Below are positions 53,729 to 61,527 of a stretch of 64,000 nucleotides of DNA, in pieces. Each line of letters starts with the position of its first letter. The stretch's first letter is position 1. The stretch lies in the NCBI GenBank assembly GCA_950097015.1, contig CATNEN010000011.1:1302001-1366000 (forward strand), read 5' to 3'. The stretch is from Macrostomum hystrix. Lineage: Eukaryota > Animalia > Platyhelminthes. The notes below the pieces were generated by a model that searched no databases, was not told the origin of the DNA, and saw only the letters and a list, made by a program, of their open reading frames with translations. Both the position numbers and the translations under genes were made by a program.

Positions 53729-54117
53729 TCAGTTCTGCTCTGCAATAGTATCCAAAATTTGAGCTTGAGTTGTTGTTTGCACTGCATGCGACTGTGCGCT
53801 CTGCTTTCGCATTGTCGTCTGCTGCAGTCGATGCTTCGGTCTCCAGATTTCACCGTGAATCGAACTCCGAACCGCAGTGGCAGAAAATCCGGCGGTGCTG
53901 GACGATCCGGTGGCTAGGCGGGAATGAGCTCGCGACCTCTGATTGTTGGCTGCGCTATTGTGACGCAATCGGCAGGTGAGAATGCGAACGAATGCGCGAC
54001 GAAAGTCCCGATTCCAGCATGCGTAAATTACCGGATTGCACAGCGAGTTGCAATAGCCGAGCCAGAATACGATTTTGAAAGCCATCTCTGGTATGTCGCA
54101 GGATTTGCAGATCCATT
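53729..54117 (-). CDS. Aminergic GPCR exon 3 (ECL3, TM7, C-tail)
   Basis: [34 protein letters not shown]; T-tract TAG acceptor at 54120-54118, phase 1. Confidence 0.93.
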
Positions 54118-54149
54118 CTAAAAAAAATTTAGTCGGAGTTTCTTTTGTT

Positions 54150-54475
54150 GTTGTTGCTATTTTTAGAATACAAGCACATGGTGTTTCCATTGGTCACAGA
54201 GGTTAGGCCTATGGAGTTGTCGCTATTTTTAGAATAGTGGCCGATCGAGGGGTGGGTTGCGACTCCCCGTATTTCTATTGGTCAGAGATGTTGGGGTTGT
54301 CGCTATTTTTAGAGTAATGATGGAGGGGTGAATTGCCACTCCCCGTGTTTCTTTATTGGTCACTGAGGTTATAGGGTTTTTGCTATTTTTAGAATAGTGG
54401 CGAAGGATGGGTTGCGCGACTTCCCGCGTTTCTATTGGTCACAGAGGTTGGGGTTGTTTTTTAGAACAGTGGCGT
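54150..54475. repeat. About 4 copies of a 66-80-bp repeat in GPCR intron 2, each with CTATTTTTAG and ATTGG
   Basis: CTATTTTTAG at 54157, 54223, 54303 and 54383. Confidence 0.85.
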
Positions 54476-54542
54476 TGAGTGACCGATTCGTCAGTTATAC
54501 GAGCTATAGTATAGGTTTCTATTGAGTCATTCTATAACTTAC

Positions 54543-54650
54543 TGAGCGGATAAAGAAGGAAGAACGGCAGCCAACAGCCGATGAACACGCCAACAACAAT
54601 GCCAAGAGTCTTGGCTGCCTTCTTTTCGCGTCGAAATTTTGCCAGCTTGC
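54543..54650 (-). CDS. Aminergic GPCR exon 2 (end of ICL3 and TM6)
   Basis: [32 protein letters not shown]; CCGCAG acceptor and A|GTAAGT donor, both phase 1. Confidence 0.95.
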
Positions 54651-54769
54651 CTGCGGTAACGGAAGAGAAACGCACATTGAATTTGATAATGGGCGAGGAC
54701 CAAATAGGATTTAAATTTATTTGCAATTGAAGACTTGATAAAGGTTTTGTCAAAGTTAATTAATAAGGA

Positions 54770-55585
54770 TCTAAGGAATTAAAGGGGATCTAAGAAATAA
54801 GAGGGGATCTCAGGAATGACAGGGGATCTAAGAAATGAGAGAGGATCTAGGGAAAAAGAGTGGATCTAAGGAAAAATGAGAGAGGATCTAAGGAATGAGA
54901 GGGAACTTGAGGAATGAGTGGGGATCTAAGAAATGAGAGGGGATCTACGGAATGAGAGGGGATCTAAATGAAATGAGAGGGGATCTAAATGGATTGAGAG
55001 AGGATCTACGGAATGAGAGGGGATCTAAATGAAATGAGAGGGGATCGAAGGAATGAGAGGGGATCAGAGGAATGAGAGGGGATCAGAGGAATGAGTGGGG
55101 ATCTAGGGATTGAGAGGGGATTTAGGGAATGAGAGGGGATTTAGGGAATGAGAGGGATCTAGGGAACGAGAGGGATCTAGGGAATGAGAGGGATCTAGGG
55201 AATGAGAGGGATCTAGGGAATGAGAGGGATCTAGGGAATGAGAGGGATCTAGGGAATGAGAGGGATCTAGGGAATGAGAGGGATCTAGGGAATGAGAGGG
55301 ATCTAGGGAATTAGAGGGATCTAAGGAGCGAGAGGGATCTAGGGAATGAGAAGGGATTTAGGGAATGAGAGGGCATGTAGGAAATGAGAGGGGATTTAGG
55401 GAATGAGAGGGGATTTAGGGGATGAGAGGGGATCTAGGGAATGAGAGGGGATCTAGGGAATGAGAGGGGATTTAGGGAATGAGAGGGGATTTAGGGAATG
55501 AGAGGGATCTAGGGAATGAGAGGGGATTTAGGGAATGAGAGGGGATTTAGGGAATGAGAGGGGATCTAAGGAATGAGAGGGGTTC
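54770..55585. repeat. 18-19-bp purine-rich minisatellite (GGGAATGAGAGGGATCTA)
   Basis: Direct periodicity. Confidence 0.95.
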
Positions 55586-56461
55586 TAAATAATTAAAAAG
55601 GATCAAAGTATCGCTTGTTTGTAGAAAATCTTTCACAGGCAAAAGCAACTGACAATAGTTTTGCATAGCGTCTCGCCCCGGCACCCTTAGCTGTACTCGA
55701 ATATGCAAAACAAGCCTAAATGAGGTTAGCTACGTCAAAGCATTGTAATCAGAAATTAAGTTATTACGCCGGTAAATAGAATGTTTTGAACAGCAGTCTT
55801 TTAGTGTAACAAAAAGCGCGCGAAATTAAAATTCAAGTTTCGATAAAAAGCACGAGTGCTAAAAATTAGTAAGAATTTAGTGTGAAATCTTATTAATAAA
55901 GGTTTGGAAAGTTCAATTATTGCAGCAATGAGTAATTGAATAGACAGTATTCTAAATATAAGCAGTTGACAAGCTGTAGTTAAAGAATAAAACCAATTTA
56001 AACTTACTATGAACCGCAGCTCGAACAGTCAAAATATCTGAGTGCATTGTCTCTAAAAATTGCGTAGTAAAACAGAAAAAACATATTTCTACGAGTATAT
56101 CTATCGAAAAAAGTTTTTTTTTCGTTTAAATTATTCACAATTCGCAGGCGTGAAGTAAGCATAACAATATAACTGTTGAAGTTAATGAGCTGAAGCCCAG
56201 TAGGTAGGTAAAAGTACAGTAAACGTCTTCACTTTTTAGGAAAATATTCAGTCTGCTTTGAAAATGCATTGTCAACTAAAACTGTTCCTGAGTTTAAACT
56301 GTTCTCAGAGTGAACAAGTTCCTTCAGCTACGTAAGGTAAACTACAAGTCTGAAATAGGAATTTTACTGGACAGAAACTTCTGAATTACTCTAAAAAACA
56401 CTTTGTGGACAAAAAGCATGCTTCACAAAATCGAAATAAGGCATATGAGAAAAGTTCTCAA

Positions 56462-57170
56462 CATCCGAAACTTCCAATAAAATCCCGAATATTCCACTGC
56501 ATTCCAGAAACTTCCACTGAAATCCCGAATCTTCCACTGAAATCCCGAAACCTCCTCTGAAATCCCGAAACTTCCACTGAAATCCCGAAACCTCCTCCGA
56601 AATCACCAAACTTCCACTGAAATCCCGAATCTTCCACTGAAATCCCGAAACTTCCACTGAAATCCCGAATCTTCCACTGAAATCCCGAAACTTCCACTGA
56701 AATCCCGAATCTTCCACTAAAATCCCGAATCTTCCACTGAAATCCCGAAACTTCCTCCGAAATCCCCAAACTTCCACTGAAATCCCGAATCTTCCACTGA
56801 AATCCCGAAACTTCCACTGAATTCCCGAAACTTCCTCCGAAATCCCCAAACTTCCACTGAAATCCCCAAACTTCCACTGAAATCCCGAAACTTCCTCCGA
56901 AATCACCAAACTTCCACTGAAATCCCGAAACTTCCACTGAAATCCCGAAACTTCCACTGAAATCCCGAAACTTCCACTGAAATCCCGAAACTTCCACTGA
57001 ATTCCCGAAACTTCCTCCGAAATCCCGAATCTTCCACTGAAATCCCGAAACTTCCACGAAACTTCCACTGAAATCCCGAAACTTCCACGAAACTTCCACT
57101 GAAATCCCGAAACTTCCACTGATTTCCTGAAACTTCCACTGAAATTTCGGAACTTCCACAGAATTACTGA
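56462..57170. repeat. 20-bp minisatellite (AAATCCCGAAACTTCCACTG)
   Basis: Direct periodicity. Confidence 0.95.
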
Positions 57171-57602
57171 AGTTTTCAAGTAGAAAATTCTTCTTAAAAC
57201 TACTGGAAAGCTTTTATAAAAAACTAAAATTCAGAAAAATCACCCACAATTCACCAAAGACCCGAAACTGTCGCTCTAAATTAACTGATTAAGCAATTAT
57301 CTAAATTTGTAAATAAAACCGTTTTTTGAATTTCATTTTGCTCTTTTGTTAATTAAGAAAGTCTTCCGTATAGATTCAAAGAAATATACTCGAGTTTTAC
57401 AATCTTAGCTCTTAAAAGTGCACTGGATATGTTTGTACAATGTGTCTGCGGTAGTCAAATGCAAATTAAATAAATTTGGTCGTTTCAAATCACTAAACTA
57501 AATAACGACAAGCAACTGCAACGATGCAATGAGCGAAACAATCGGTTCTTGTAAATCAGATGATCAAATTTTCTTATAAAACACGGACCTTTCAATTTCA
57601 CA

Positions 57603-58290
57603 AACAGGCTGATAAGATGGGGCAGAAACAAGCTGATAAGATGGGGCAGAAACAGGCTGATAAAATATCGGAGAAACAGGCAGATACGATATGGGAGAAA
57701 CAGGCAGATAAGATATGGGAGAAACAGGCTGATAAGATATGGGAGAAACAGGCTGATAAGATATGGGAGAAACAGGCTGATAAGATATGGGAGAAACAGG
57801 CAGATACGATATGGGAGAAACAGGCTGATAAGATATGGGAGAAACAGGCTGATAAGATATGGGAGAAACGGGCAGATACGATATGGGAGAAACAGGCAAA
57901 TACGATATTGGAGAAACAGGCTGATAAGATGGGGCAGAAACAGACAGATAAGATAGGGGGAGAAACAGCAGATAAGATATAGGAGAAACAGGCTGATAAG
58001 ATGGGGCAGAAACAGACAGATAAGATAGGGGGAGAAACAGCAGATAAGATATGAGAGAAACAGGCTGATGCGATATGGGAGAAACAGCCAGATACGATAT
58101 GGGAGGAACAGGCAGATAAGATATGGGAGAAACAGGCTGATAAGATATGGGAGAAACAGGCTGATAAGATATGGGAGAAACAGGCAGATAAGATATGGGA
58201 GAAACAGGCAGATAAGATATGGGAGAAACAGATTAAACAGGGAGAGACATGAAGATTAGGGGGAGAAACAGGCAGATTAGAGGGGATAAT
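57603..58290. repeat. 24-bp minisatellite (GATAAGATATGGGAGAAACAGGCT)
   Basis: Direct periodicity. Confidence 0.95.
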
Positions 58291-59183
58291 CATACAAGTT
58301 ATTTGTTAGTTAAGACAATATTGTCGCATGGAGACTGCTATCTGGAAGATCCCGCATACTTATATCATTGGAAAACTGCCACCAACTATTTATTGATGTT
58401 CTGTCGACGCTAGAGAAAAACGTCGATGCTCCTCTGAAGATAGACACGAAAAAACTTTTTGCTCAACTTTTTTTTATCAAGAAACGCTGATAGAGTTAGT
58501 AAATAAAGTACATACGGGACTTCAATTTAGTAACGTGTGTACTTTTAAAAACAATCTGCCATACTAGCTCTGGCTTTATAGGAACTCATAGCCTAGTAAA
58601 CTCGTTTGGGAAATCTTCTTTTTAAAAAAAATAAGATGCTGCAAGACGAAGTCAATTTCTAGAATTAATCTCTTCCCTGCTCTCTCTCCCCCTCTCTCAT
58701 TTTATTTAACGTTGCCCCAAACTGTGTAGACAAAGAAAGAGAAAGTTGCTTTGAGGCGCAGTTACTGGAGAATTTTTTTAAGGCAGTCAAAGCTACTTAA
58801 AGCTTTATTTATTTTCCGTGTTTTTTTCCATAGGGGATTACAGATTATTGCTACTTTAGAAGGATTACCTGCCATAAAATATAATTTATATCCGTTAGAT
58901 GGTCCGAATGGAGATTACTGTATTAACTTCTCCCTGGTTTCTCATTTCACGCGCCCTCTTAATGTACTCTCTCCTCTCTCCCCCTGCCTGTTCAATTTAT
59001 TTATTAGCCTTATCTTCTCTCTCGGCTCTGATTGGCTCTCACCTCGTCTCTCTTTCCTTCCCCTGCGTTTCTTCTCTTACCTCTGGCCAGTCCGCGCACA
59101 TGTTACCCTTCTAACCAACCCCCCTTCCTTATCGCTCTGTTAAACTTAAATATATTTTGACTCTCGGCCTGAATTGGCTCACT

Positions 59184-59228
59184 GCCGTATGAACGGGCTC
59201 TTACTGCGAGGACTCAATTTGTTGCATA
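59184..59228 (+). ncRNA. Flatworm spliced-leader (SL)-like sequence; probable SL RNA pseudogene or variant
   Basis: GCCGTATGAACGGGCTCTTACTGCGAGGACTCAATTTGTTGCATA closely resembles the Macrostomum SL exon as I recall it (CCGTAAAGACGGTCTCTTACTGCGAAGACTCAATTTATTGCATG) and the Schistosoma SL 3' end (ATTTGTTGCATG). It lacks the terminal ATG|GT. The comparison is from memory, not a search. Confidence 0.65.
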
Positions 59229-59315
59229 AGAAATCGTTACAATTACTATAATATTAGTGCTTACTATAATTTATTAAATAAAAATAGTTATAATTGATCA
59301 TATGTATGTTCGTAT

Positions 59316-59432
59316 GTTCAGTCCATGGACTGGGGGACGCCCTAACTGATTACCCTAGCTGATGCTAAGTGTCTTGCTGAAGAACAAAAATTGTTTAAGT
59401 GGAGTCGAAAATCGAACCCGCGACCTTCAAGC
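59316..59432 (-). mobile_element. Truncated, diverged CORE-SINE fragment
   Basis: GTTCAGTCCATGGACTGGGGGACGCC, AAGTGTCTTGCT and a reverse B box AATCGAACCC. Confidence 0.75.
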
Positions 59433-59759
59433 GAATGCGAATGAACTGCACCCTCCATATGACTTTCTATGAATGAACTGCGTCAAATTTCAAAAGACAA
59501 TCGAATCCAAAAGCAGACAAGCACGGAACCAACTCTTATTTGCTTGCGTGAGTTGGAAAACCTGCCAAGTGTGATTTTCTAATATCCGCTTTACGGGACA
59601 AAGAGTGAAAGTGTTATTAACTTCATAGGTAGCTATAGTGGAGTTCACAATGATCTGTATAAAGCGGTGCAATTTAAAAAAAGGGCATGCTTTTATTCAA
59701 AAATTGCTGCCTGATTTTAAAGGATTTTTCTGACGCAGTATAAATTATGGGATTCTAGG

Positions 59760-60160
59760 AGTGTTTCACAATGTTTCACAATATTTCACTATGTTCCCAT
59801 AATGGGATTATTCAATTGTTTCACAGTATCCCATTATGGGATTCAATTCAACGATTGTTTCACAATATCCCATTATGGGACTCTACGAACGTCTCACAAT
59901 ATCCCATTATCGGATTCTACGAATGTCTCACAATATCCCATTATGGGATTCTTCAATTGTTTCACAATATCCCATTATGGGATTCTTCGATTGCTTCACA
60001 ATATCCCAATATGAGAATAAATAATTTTTCCTCATATAAAATAACGAGATTATGCGATTATAAAAAAATCCCACGATTATCGAGACTAAACGATACTTTC
60101 ACAATATCACCAAAGGGATTAGACGATAATTTCAGAATATCCCATTATGGTACATCCTAT
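59760..60160. repeat. About 33-bp degenerate minisatellite with the palindrome ATCCCAT-T-ATGGGAT, beside the GPCR exon 1 donor
   Basis: Repeated TTTCACAATATCCCATTATGGGATT. Confidence 0.88.
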
Positions 60161-60212
60161 CAATAAATTATGCTTTGAAATGGGATAAAATCATTCTAGT
60201 ACTGATCCTCAC

Positions 60213-61107
60213 CTGCAGCCATCAGTCTGGAACTAATCTGCTGATGCGTCTGACCACCGCAGCTGCCAGCTCCGCCGCCGCGATGCACCCTCAGTGTCAC
60301 CGTGTCTGTCGTCGCTGACGAGCCTATTAAAGCACTGGCAGCATTCGAAGCAGCAGCGGACGGAGCTCTGGAGGCCAGCAGTCCGGCACCAGTTCGAGTA
60401 GTCTTGACCCCGGAGGCCAGGAATCGAGTCTGCTTAGCCGCAGCTTGGTACACTCGAATGTAGAAGAATACAACAATGCCCAATGGCAGGTAGAATGAGA
60501 ATAGCGATGAGAACAGAATATAAGACGCATTGTTAGACACTGCGCACTTATTTGGATCGTTGTTGACTGCAGTCTGCTGCTGCTGCTGCTGCTGCTGTTG
60601 CTGATTTCTCCAGCCTAGCAATGGTCCCACAGATACTAAACCGGACAGCAACCACACGCAGAGTACAATTACTGCAGCTCTGCGTTGGCTAACTATGCGA
60701 GCTCTTTGCAGAGGTCTGGTGACACCAACGTATCGATCCATCGAGATGGCGCACAGGGACATGATGCTGGCTGTGCAGCACATCACATCAATGGATGCCC
60801 ATAGATCGCAGATCGCAGATCCGAACAGCCAGCAGCCGTGTGTGATCTCCAGAGCAGAGCTGAGCGGCAGAACGCAGACGCCAAGCAGCAAGTCAGCGAT
60901 GGCCAAATTTGATACGAATATTGTTGTAGTGGAACGAAGCGAACGATTCAATAGTACAGCCAGGAGGACTAGAGAATTGCCTACGATGGTTGCGAATGAG
61001 ATAGTACCCAAAGCTAGGCCGGTAACTAGGGACCATCGATCCAATTGTAGGACTGTTGAGCAGCTCCGGATTGTTGAATTGGTTATGGTGTCATTATTCT
61101 CGATCAT
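60213..61107 (-). CDS. Aminergic class A GPCR, alpha1-adrenergic/octopamine-alpha type, exon 1 (TM1-TM5, start of ICL3); spliced product about 463 aa
   Basis: GNSLVLLAV, NLAIADLLLG..VLP, WLFGSAICDLWASIDVMCCTASIMSLCAISMDRY (D3.32), TM5 YILFSSLFSFYLP (Ser pattern), RVHRGG. The first ATG is 61107 (the track's 61128 is TTG), followed by N-glycosylation sequons NDT and NST. G|GTGAGG donor, phase 1. The ligand is not determinable from sequence. Confidence 0.93.
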
Positions 61108-61527
61108 TTCTAGATTATTTAGTTTCAATGCCGCTTCGATAGCTCAGTGTCGGTTACAATGTGGCCCAGTACATGGCTATATTGTGAATCCTAAATATAT
61201 CTACTTCTCCACCATTTGCCCGGGCTTTTCTACGCCATCCCGGACCAATAGCAGAGTTGCTAGGGAGTTGCTGGGGGCAGCTAGAAAAAAGTTAAACAGT
61301 AGAAAGAACTTTTTTTCTTCATCTCCGAAAATATCAACCAATCGCCATGAAATCCAGAACACGGGCGGTTAAATTTTCCGCTCTACCCGACGAAACAACT
61401 ACCAGAATCATGAAACAACGCCATCGTCGAGATATTCAACGAATCTCGTCCGGGTGTCTGGTGGCAAAAGCCACACAATCATGTAATCATGTCGGCTATT
61501 GTCGGCTTGAATATCGCTAATCGCTGA

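Follow-up and report, generated by a model that had tools for sequence, protein, structure and literature searches.

A probable retro-copied spliced leader exon at the end of a solo BEL/Pao LTR in Macrostomum hystrix

A short stretch of the flatworm genome of Macrostomum hystrix resembles a spliced leader (SL) exon and lies inside an intron of a receptor gene, which raises the question of whether it is a decayed SL RNA gene or whether the exon arrived there by another route. The locus is part of 64,000 nucleotides of contig CATNEN010000011.1 (assembly GCA_950097015.1, forward strand, positions 1,302,001 to 1,366,000), referred to here as the window. Positions 59184-59241 read GCCGTATGAACGGGCTCTTACTGCGAGGACTCAATTTGTTGCAT AAGAAATCGTTACA on the plus strand. 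A preliminary description of the window regarded them as a diverged genomic copy of an SL RNA gene that had lost its AUG and its splice donor. It also recognised the host as a trans-splicing flatworm, which M. hystrix is. The analysis reported here leads to a different assignment, held with high confidence: positions 59184-59241 represent the R/U5 end of a solo BEL/Pao LTR that carries a retro-copied SL exon.

Similarity to the SL RNA genes of M. hystrix

When aligned with the 45-nt exon of the SL RNA genes found in the same genome, positions 59184-59228 were identical at 38 of 45 bases, and no indel was required. The local alignment score was 58, compared with a mean of 12.8 and a maximum of 24 for shuffled sequences, and none of 2000 shuffles reached the observed value. 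The SL resemblance of this segment is far beyond chance, and its derivation from a flatworm SL, as originally proposed, was confirmed. Relative to the canonical exon, the segment carried seven substitutions, A7T, A8G, G9A, T14G, A27G, A38G and G45A, the last of which abolishes the terminal AUG. Against the published 35-nt SL of M. lignano, three of the first 34 positions differed, and A replaced the G that ends the AUG.

Bona fide SL RNA genes of M. hystrix had the structure GCCGTAAAGACGGTCTCTTACTGCGAAGACTCAATTTATTGCATG|GTAAGACACCGTTGATCC...CTATATTTTTAGC..., with an Sm-like site after the exon. Type A genes (GCCGTAAAGACGG...CAATTTATTGCATG|GTAAGAC) were located about 300 bp from U1 snRNA in repeats of ~11.6 kb. 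Type B genes (CGAATTCAGTCGGTCTCTTACTGCGAAGACTCTCTTTTTTGCATG|GTAAGAC) possessed their own Sm-like GTATTTTTGA and alternated with 5S rRNA in a tandem array with units of 927 bp. The SL gene loci were L032-L049 on contigs C15, C17 and C42 and L080 (G000:C39:12667000-12670000), with an array reaching to at least 12.683 Mb. The exon was the only part that these genes clearly had in common with the window LTR. Apart from a short intron-like match considered below, homology began at exon base 1 and stopped at the last base of the exon; the upstream GGCAGAATCTTT and the GTAAGACACCG intron with its Sm-like site were absent from the LTR. Outside the exon, the window copy comprised retrotransposon U3 on the upstream side and, downstream, the terminal 13 nt of the LTR and then the target-site duplication (TSD).

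The splice junction of the window copy read GCATA|AGAAATC, compared with GCATG|GTAAG in real genes. Nothing like the Sm-like ATATTTTTAG was found after the window segment, which is followed by only 13 nt up to the LTR end. As the sequence beyond 59241 differs in every copy, neither a conserved intron nor a conserved Sm site is possible there. The preliminary description had already noted that an Sm site was missing downstream, and indeed nothing similar to the CTATATTTTTAGC of real genes was present. A pattern search that permitted GGT after the variant exon returned no variant SL gene with an intact donor. Lacking donor, intron and Sm site, the window copy cannot donate a leader and is an inert relic. 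The earlier view that the locus is a non-functional donor thus remained valid with respect to the missing GT and Sm site, but not with respect to its supposed cause, the decay of an SL gene.

The preliminary description had further drawn two hairpins in the segment and considered them as retained structure. Both hairpins can be drawn, but the minimum free energy structure of the 58-nt RNA was a different one, and its fold did not differ significantly from shuffled sequences (z -1.73, with 12 of 200 shuffles equally good). The suggestion of retained structure is not supported statistically. The predicted fold paired AACGG with UCGUU and UCUUA with UAAGA, like stem I of real SL RNA.

A solo LTR of a BEL/Pao family and its relatives

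The SL-like stretch 59184-59241 constituted the final 58 bases of a 323-bp solo LTR (Table 1). In BLAST comparisons of the window with the genomic copies, the full 323 bp showed 90.9-99.4% identity to more than 15 other copies, and similarity was sharply limited at 58919 and 59241. The insertion and its flanks read ...GAGATTAC|TG...CA|ATTACTATA. The features expected of a solo LTR were present, namely TG...CA termini, a short TSD, a multicopy family and full elements with primer-binding site (PBS) and polypurine tract (PPT). A second LTR copy was not found within the 64-kb window. These features would be accounted for by insertion of a BEL/Pao element with duplication of ATTAC and later LTR-LTR recombination that left a single LTR.

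Table 1. Features of the solo LTR and its host intron, in window coordinates
Feature	Position	Strand	Basis
Left target-site duplication ATTAC, 5 bp	58914..58918		Identical 5-mers abut both LTR ends
Solo LTR, BEL/Pao family, 323 bp, TGTATT...GTTACA	58919..59241	+	BLAST against genomic copies
TATA-like box TAAATATATTTT, in U3	59147..59158	+	Read directly from the sequence
SL-exon-derived segment, 45 nt	59184..59228	+	Alignment to the canonical exon
Native U5 terminus, last 13 nt of the LTR, AGAAATCGTTACA	59229..59241	+	Comparison of copies
Right target-site duplication ATTAC	59242..59246		Abuts the LTR end
Intron of rhodopsin-type GPCR gene, approximate bounds from ORF ends	54754..60195	-	7tm_1 split between ORFs

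The LTR is oriented antisense to the host GPCR gene. The Pfam domain 7tm_1 was split over three minus-strand ORFs, with domain positions 1-189 on ORF 60196-61128 (2.1e-52), positions 191-225 on ORF 54532-54753 and positions 229-260 on ORF 53729-54190. This agreed with the antisense intronic location given in the preliminary description. The same intron contained blocks of short tandem repeats at 56391-57179 and 57560-58293, the latter with a period of about 24 nt, and long spurious ORFs were produced by both blocks in either orientation. On the minus strand, 59330-59450 was occupied by a SINE-like repeat of tRNA origin that had a T-arm-like GGTTCGATTTTCGACTCCAC, and related copies occurred in contigs from public runs. 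A SNORD48 match inside this repeat (59342-59399) had an E value of 0.067, was below the gathering threshold and is probably due to chance. Searches of 57000-61500 against Rfam (E up to 10) gave chance-level matches only, and no SL family was among them. ARAGORN called no tRNA over the window, the SINE-like repeat included.

A whole-genome search with 59150-59330 identified at least 79 candidate copies. The 49-nt variant GCCGTATGAACGGG...GCATAAGAA occurred 50 times at up to three mismatches, and 26 genomic copies were identical to the window copy over the 49 nt. The seven differences from the SL are therefore family traits and not the decay of a local copy that had been assumed at first. The GCATAAGAA junction (GCATA|AGAAATC) was present in 50 of 50 copies and a GT donor in none. 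The sequence upstream of the leader-like part was conserved in all 29 other copies inspected, and in nearly all of them similarity ended abruptly 13 nt past it. The 3' end of the family read ...AAATCGTTACA, or ...AATTCAAGACA in one subfamily, with a few copies damaged at this place. Several copies showed TGGCGCCCGAAC or TGGCGCCCAATG immediately after the LTR, representing a tRNA primer-binding site, and in two copies (L006 and L021) the LTR continued into the PBS TGGCGCCC.

The coding part of the family is missing from the window copy, and the BEL/Pao domains come from full-length relatives. The full-length relative L061 on contig 39 held two such LTRs, the PBS TGGCGCCCGATG and the PPT GGGGGGAG before its 3' LTR, together with a near-identical flanking repeat. 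Its ORFs matched the Pfam families Peptidase_A17 (Pao retrotransposon peptidase; 1.4e-48), RVT_1 (1.1e-07) and DUF1759 (gag; 1.5e-14). The LTR family thus belongs to BEL/Pao. Two subfamilies were distinguished, the autonomous subfamily A and subfamily B, which had the last ~127 bp of the LTR in common (equivalent to 59115-59241). Subfamily B was represented by the short non-autonomous L063, with 351-bp LTRs around 1.56 kb of tandem repeats. These two LTRs were 100% identical, indicating that the family was active recently. The older relatives L065 and L066 carried three of the seven substitutions (A7T, T14G and G45A) and had the same junction as the window copy. As read from the sequences, they form part of a nested series that leads from the canonical SL to the form in the window.

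Three loci showed unusual arrangements. In L057 (G000:C3:9791459-9794489), an LTR of the same family, a subfamily-B-like U3 was combined with an SL exon of exactly canonical sequence, after which came CATAAGAAATCAAGACA; an old relic seems to have been overwritten by a fresh leader, the last bases of the relic being kept. L079 (G000:C39:11246800-11249900) comprised the family U3 and canonical SL up to base 42, followed by unique sequence that had no match among the other loci examined. It may be a template-switch chimera within the leader, or the result of a deletion. At L013 (G000:C30:3977316-3980400), an LTR was arranged head-to-head with an adjoining inverted LTR that had an internal deletion and a PBS (...AAGAAATCGCACCACATTGGGCGCCATGTAACGATTGAACAGG...).

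Leader exons were also found outside this lineage. A second BEL/Pao lineage, F2 (L051-L060 and L064), had 55% amino acid identity to the window lineage in its reverse transcriptase. It carried the exact canonical exon between a different U3 and a 49-nt U5, followed by the PBS TGGCGCACGAAC. Further repeat families with a leader exon were L067/68, L069-71, L072-74 and L075-77. Across L067-L078, located on several contigs, at least four repeat families had the leader exon followed by family-specific sequence. In L073, a type-B-like 5' part was joined to a type-A 3' part. The 5' boundary of the relic coincided exactly with exon base 1 in subfamilies A and B, F2, L069-71 and L072, and some others were 5'-truncated. 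The 3' boundary was exact (...GCATG) in F2, L067/68, L072-74 and L077, and correct within 1-2 nt in the window family. There, the border between exon and U5 can be placed only to within one or two bases, as the junction base is A and not the G of AUG. The AUG was lost in three families, which read ATA (window family), ATA (L069-71) and AGA (L075/76). The distant relatives L086 and L087, with about 70% identity in gag, showed a weak leader-like remnant at the same place (TCTTACTG...CTCA.TT.T.TTGC), the score of which was equalled by 30 of 2000 shuffles. This suggests that the relic is old in the clade that includes them. For L088, 51 of 2000 shuffles equalled the leader score and a clear SL relic was not found.

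Origin and possible function of the relic

The SL most likely entered the LTR by reverse transcription of a trans-spliced element RNA. Trans-splicing would have attached the SL to the leader of an ancestral element RNA, within a few bases of the PBS on its upstream side, and tRNA-primed synthesis of minus-strand strong-stop DNA would have copied the SL up to the RNA 5' end. Strand transfer would then have placed the SL copy behind U3, yielding the order U3-SL-U5' in both progeny LTRs. The first transfer after the gain of the SL would have taken place without R homology and hence have been a rare, illegitimate event. Subsequently, the relic would have evolved with the element, acquiring seven substitutions that include the loss of the AUG. 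The exact exon boundaries described above are the mark of a capped 5' end of a trans-spliced RNA that was copied as cDNA.

RNA sources consisted of contigs from four public runs of one study, the kind of run being unrecorded. Between 58700 and 59500, these contigs covered 58916-59241 and, at 59350-59430, the SINE-like repeat, and left the unique flanks uncovered. Such coverage fits transcriptome data without proving it. Since it comprises repeats and not unique flanks, it is uninformative on the expression of the window copy. In the contigs, the variant leader was preceded by U3 and continued into U5, PBS and internal sequence; joints of the variant leader to host exons were not found among the contigs of the four runs. 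A 217-nt contig that started exactly at 59184 was considered as a transcription start and rejected. Position 59183 is polymorphic (T/A), so that the assembly graph breaks there, which explains the start of the contig. An apparent RNA junction at 59207, from the leader into unrelated sequence, was traced to a truncated genomic copy at C6:320345-320379.

Other explanations start from the SL RNA or its gene. The LTR may have taken up the 5' portion of an SL gene or of an unspliced SL RNA, comprising the exon and about 13 nt of intron, and may then have lost GGT. With GGT removed, 9 of 11 positions agreed between the AAGAAATCGTT after the exon and AAGACACCGTT, the start of the SL intron; the mimicry of stem I of real SL RNA by the predicted fold points in the same direction. 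The intron resemblance was, however, spotted post hoc. The preliminary description had also explained the junction as GCATGGTAAGAA minus GGT, but this deletion is unneeded, since a full-length 45-nt exon with G45A explains the variant without an indel and the remaining AGAAATCGTTACA fits the motif of LTR termini. The terminal GAAATCGTTACA conforms to AA[AGT]TCNNNACA, a motif of several BEL/Pao families, and AA[AGT]TCNNNACA|TGGCGCCC was found at 23 LTR/PBS junctions of such families, including L088, which has no clear SL relic. A junction in support of capture would read ...GCATGGTAAGA; no copy kept the GT or any further intron, and the relics of other families end exactly at the last base of the exon. 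Capture of unspliced SL RNA is accordingly improbable.

A stand-alone SL RNA pseudogene, decayed in place with loss of its AUG and donor, would account for the 45 exon-like nucleotides and for the missing donor and Sm site. It would not account for the location of the segment within a repeat of 323 bp that has TG..CA ends and a TSD, for 26 identical copies, or for an upstream region that is retrotransposon U3 and not that of an SL gene. Real SL genes, moreover, are located in arrays linked to U1 or 5S rRNA. Promoter homology is absent, and the intron-like match at 9 of 11 positions competes with the motif of LTR termini. The family-wide identity and the LTR boundaries led to the rejection of an in-place pseudogene, and with it of the original interpretation as a genomic SL RNA gene copy; its probability is very small. 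Even less credence can be given to the idea that the LTR carries a variant SL RNA gene that is functional, or that an intact donor is concealed by an assembly error. The exon similarity and the upstream TATA-like box are all that could be cited for either. The reading was GCATAAGAA in all 50 copies, the pattern search detected no gene with GGT after the variant exon, and the contigs of the four public runs gave the same GCATAAGAA leading into U5 and PBS, with no joints to host exons.

The position of the relic in the LTR bears on the element's own transcript. The distance from the first T of the TATA box TAAATATATTTT to the first SL base was 37 nt. The TATA box and the following TTGACTCTCGGCCT were conserved in both subfamilies, A and B, and also in the distantly related L086 and L087. 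The transcription start is predicted near 59178-59184. Since the relic follows the TATA box at a distance of about 30 nt, an SL-like leader probably forms the start of element transcripts and would act as the R repeat in strand transfer. A more far-reaching and rather doubtful proposal is that the SL segment is a working module of the active lineage and its non-autonomous parasites, serving as transcript start, as R and as a host-like leader purged of its AUG. The segment was identical between subfamilies A and B despite their differing upstream U3. Across the 29 other copies, it showed 2.15% differences, compared with 5.35% over the 69 nt of U3 next to it (nominal Fisher p 3e-6, a value that is unreliable as the copies are phylogenetically dependent). 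The lower divergence is suggestive of constraint. The loss of the AUG in three families would be expected if an upstream AUG harms the element. L057 and L079, with canonical SL on young U3, hint at exchange with cellular SL-bearing RNAs.

SL-like sequences in Macrostomum genomes are mostly retrotransposon LTRs and not SL genes or pseudogenes. Owing to this LTR origin, such matches need to be filtered in any mapping of SL genes or trans-splice sites. The relics would imply that trans-spliced retrotransposon RNAs were still able to complete reverse transcription. Macrostomum species share a conserved cellular SL, at least in the 35 nt that are published, and the distance of a relic from it can thus be used as a rough measure of the divergence since acquisition. 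If the relic does provide transcript start and R, a mobile element would have adopted a host RNA-processing tag as a replication signal.

Comparison with known systems

Relict spliced leaders in recycled cDNAs, located in the 5' UTRs of host genes, were reportedly described in dinoflagellates by Slamovits and Keeling in 2008 (as cited in PMC12582326). The dinoflagellate relicts and those of M. hystrix have in common that SL exon copies are present in DNA and are explained by the reverse transcription and reintegration of trans-spliced RNAs. They differ in the carrier, which is a host gene in dinoflagellates and the retrotransposon's own LTR in M. hystrix. Because the carrier is the element's own LTR, the relic is copied at every transposition.

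The SL RNA genes of Macrostomum, comprising those of M. hystrix and the 109-bp gene of M. lignano (PMC8629364), share with the relic the 45-nt exon, the CCGT..ACGG hairpin and the ...CAATTTATTGCAT core. In M. lignano, the leader reads CGGTCTCTTACTGCGAAGACTCAATTTATTGCATG and is followed by GTAAG in the gene (PMC8629364). The continuation G|GTAAGACACCG, two more hairpins and an Sm-like site are confined to the real genes and absent from the window element. The real genes of M. hystrix are moreover located in tandem units linked to U1 or 5S rRNA, unlike the window element. As a retrotransposon, the Macrostomum element resembles Sinbad, a BEL/Pao element of Schistosoma mansoni, in its Pao-type pol and DUF1759 gag. 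The Macrostomum element also has a tRNA PBS directly after the LTR, a 5-bp TSD and an SL segment in every LTR, the last being a feature that Sinbad is not known to have.

The closest parallel comes from parasitic flatworms, in which 597 SL-like loci were reported in LTR and LINE elements and explained as integrated retrotransposon transcripts that had gained the SL by trans-splicing (Mol Biol Evol 2025, PMC12582326). In these loci as in the M. hystrix relic, a partial or whole exon is the sole feature of an SL RNA and is found in mobile elements. This type of SL scar is thus already known from flatworms, and the window copy is an ordinary example of it; the pattern of interest is that of the family. 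The loci in PMC12582326 were mentioned briefly as discarded candidates and belong to parasitic species, whereas M. hystrix is free-living. Compared with that report, the present analysis adds the mapping of the relic to the U3/U5 junction, the nested substitutions across the family and a solo LTR with its TSD.
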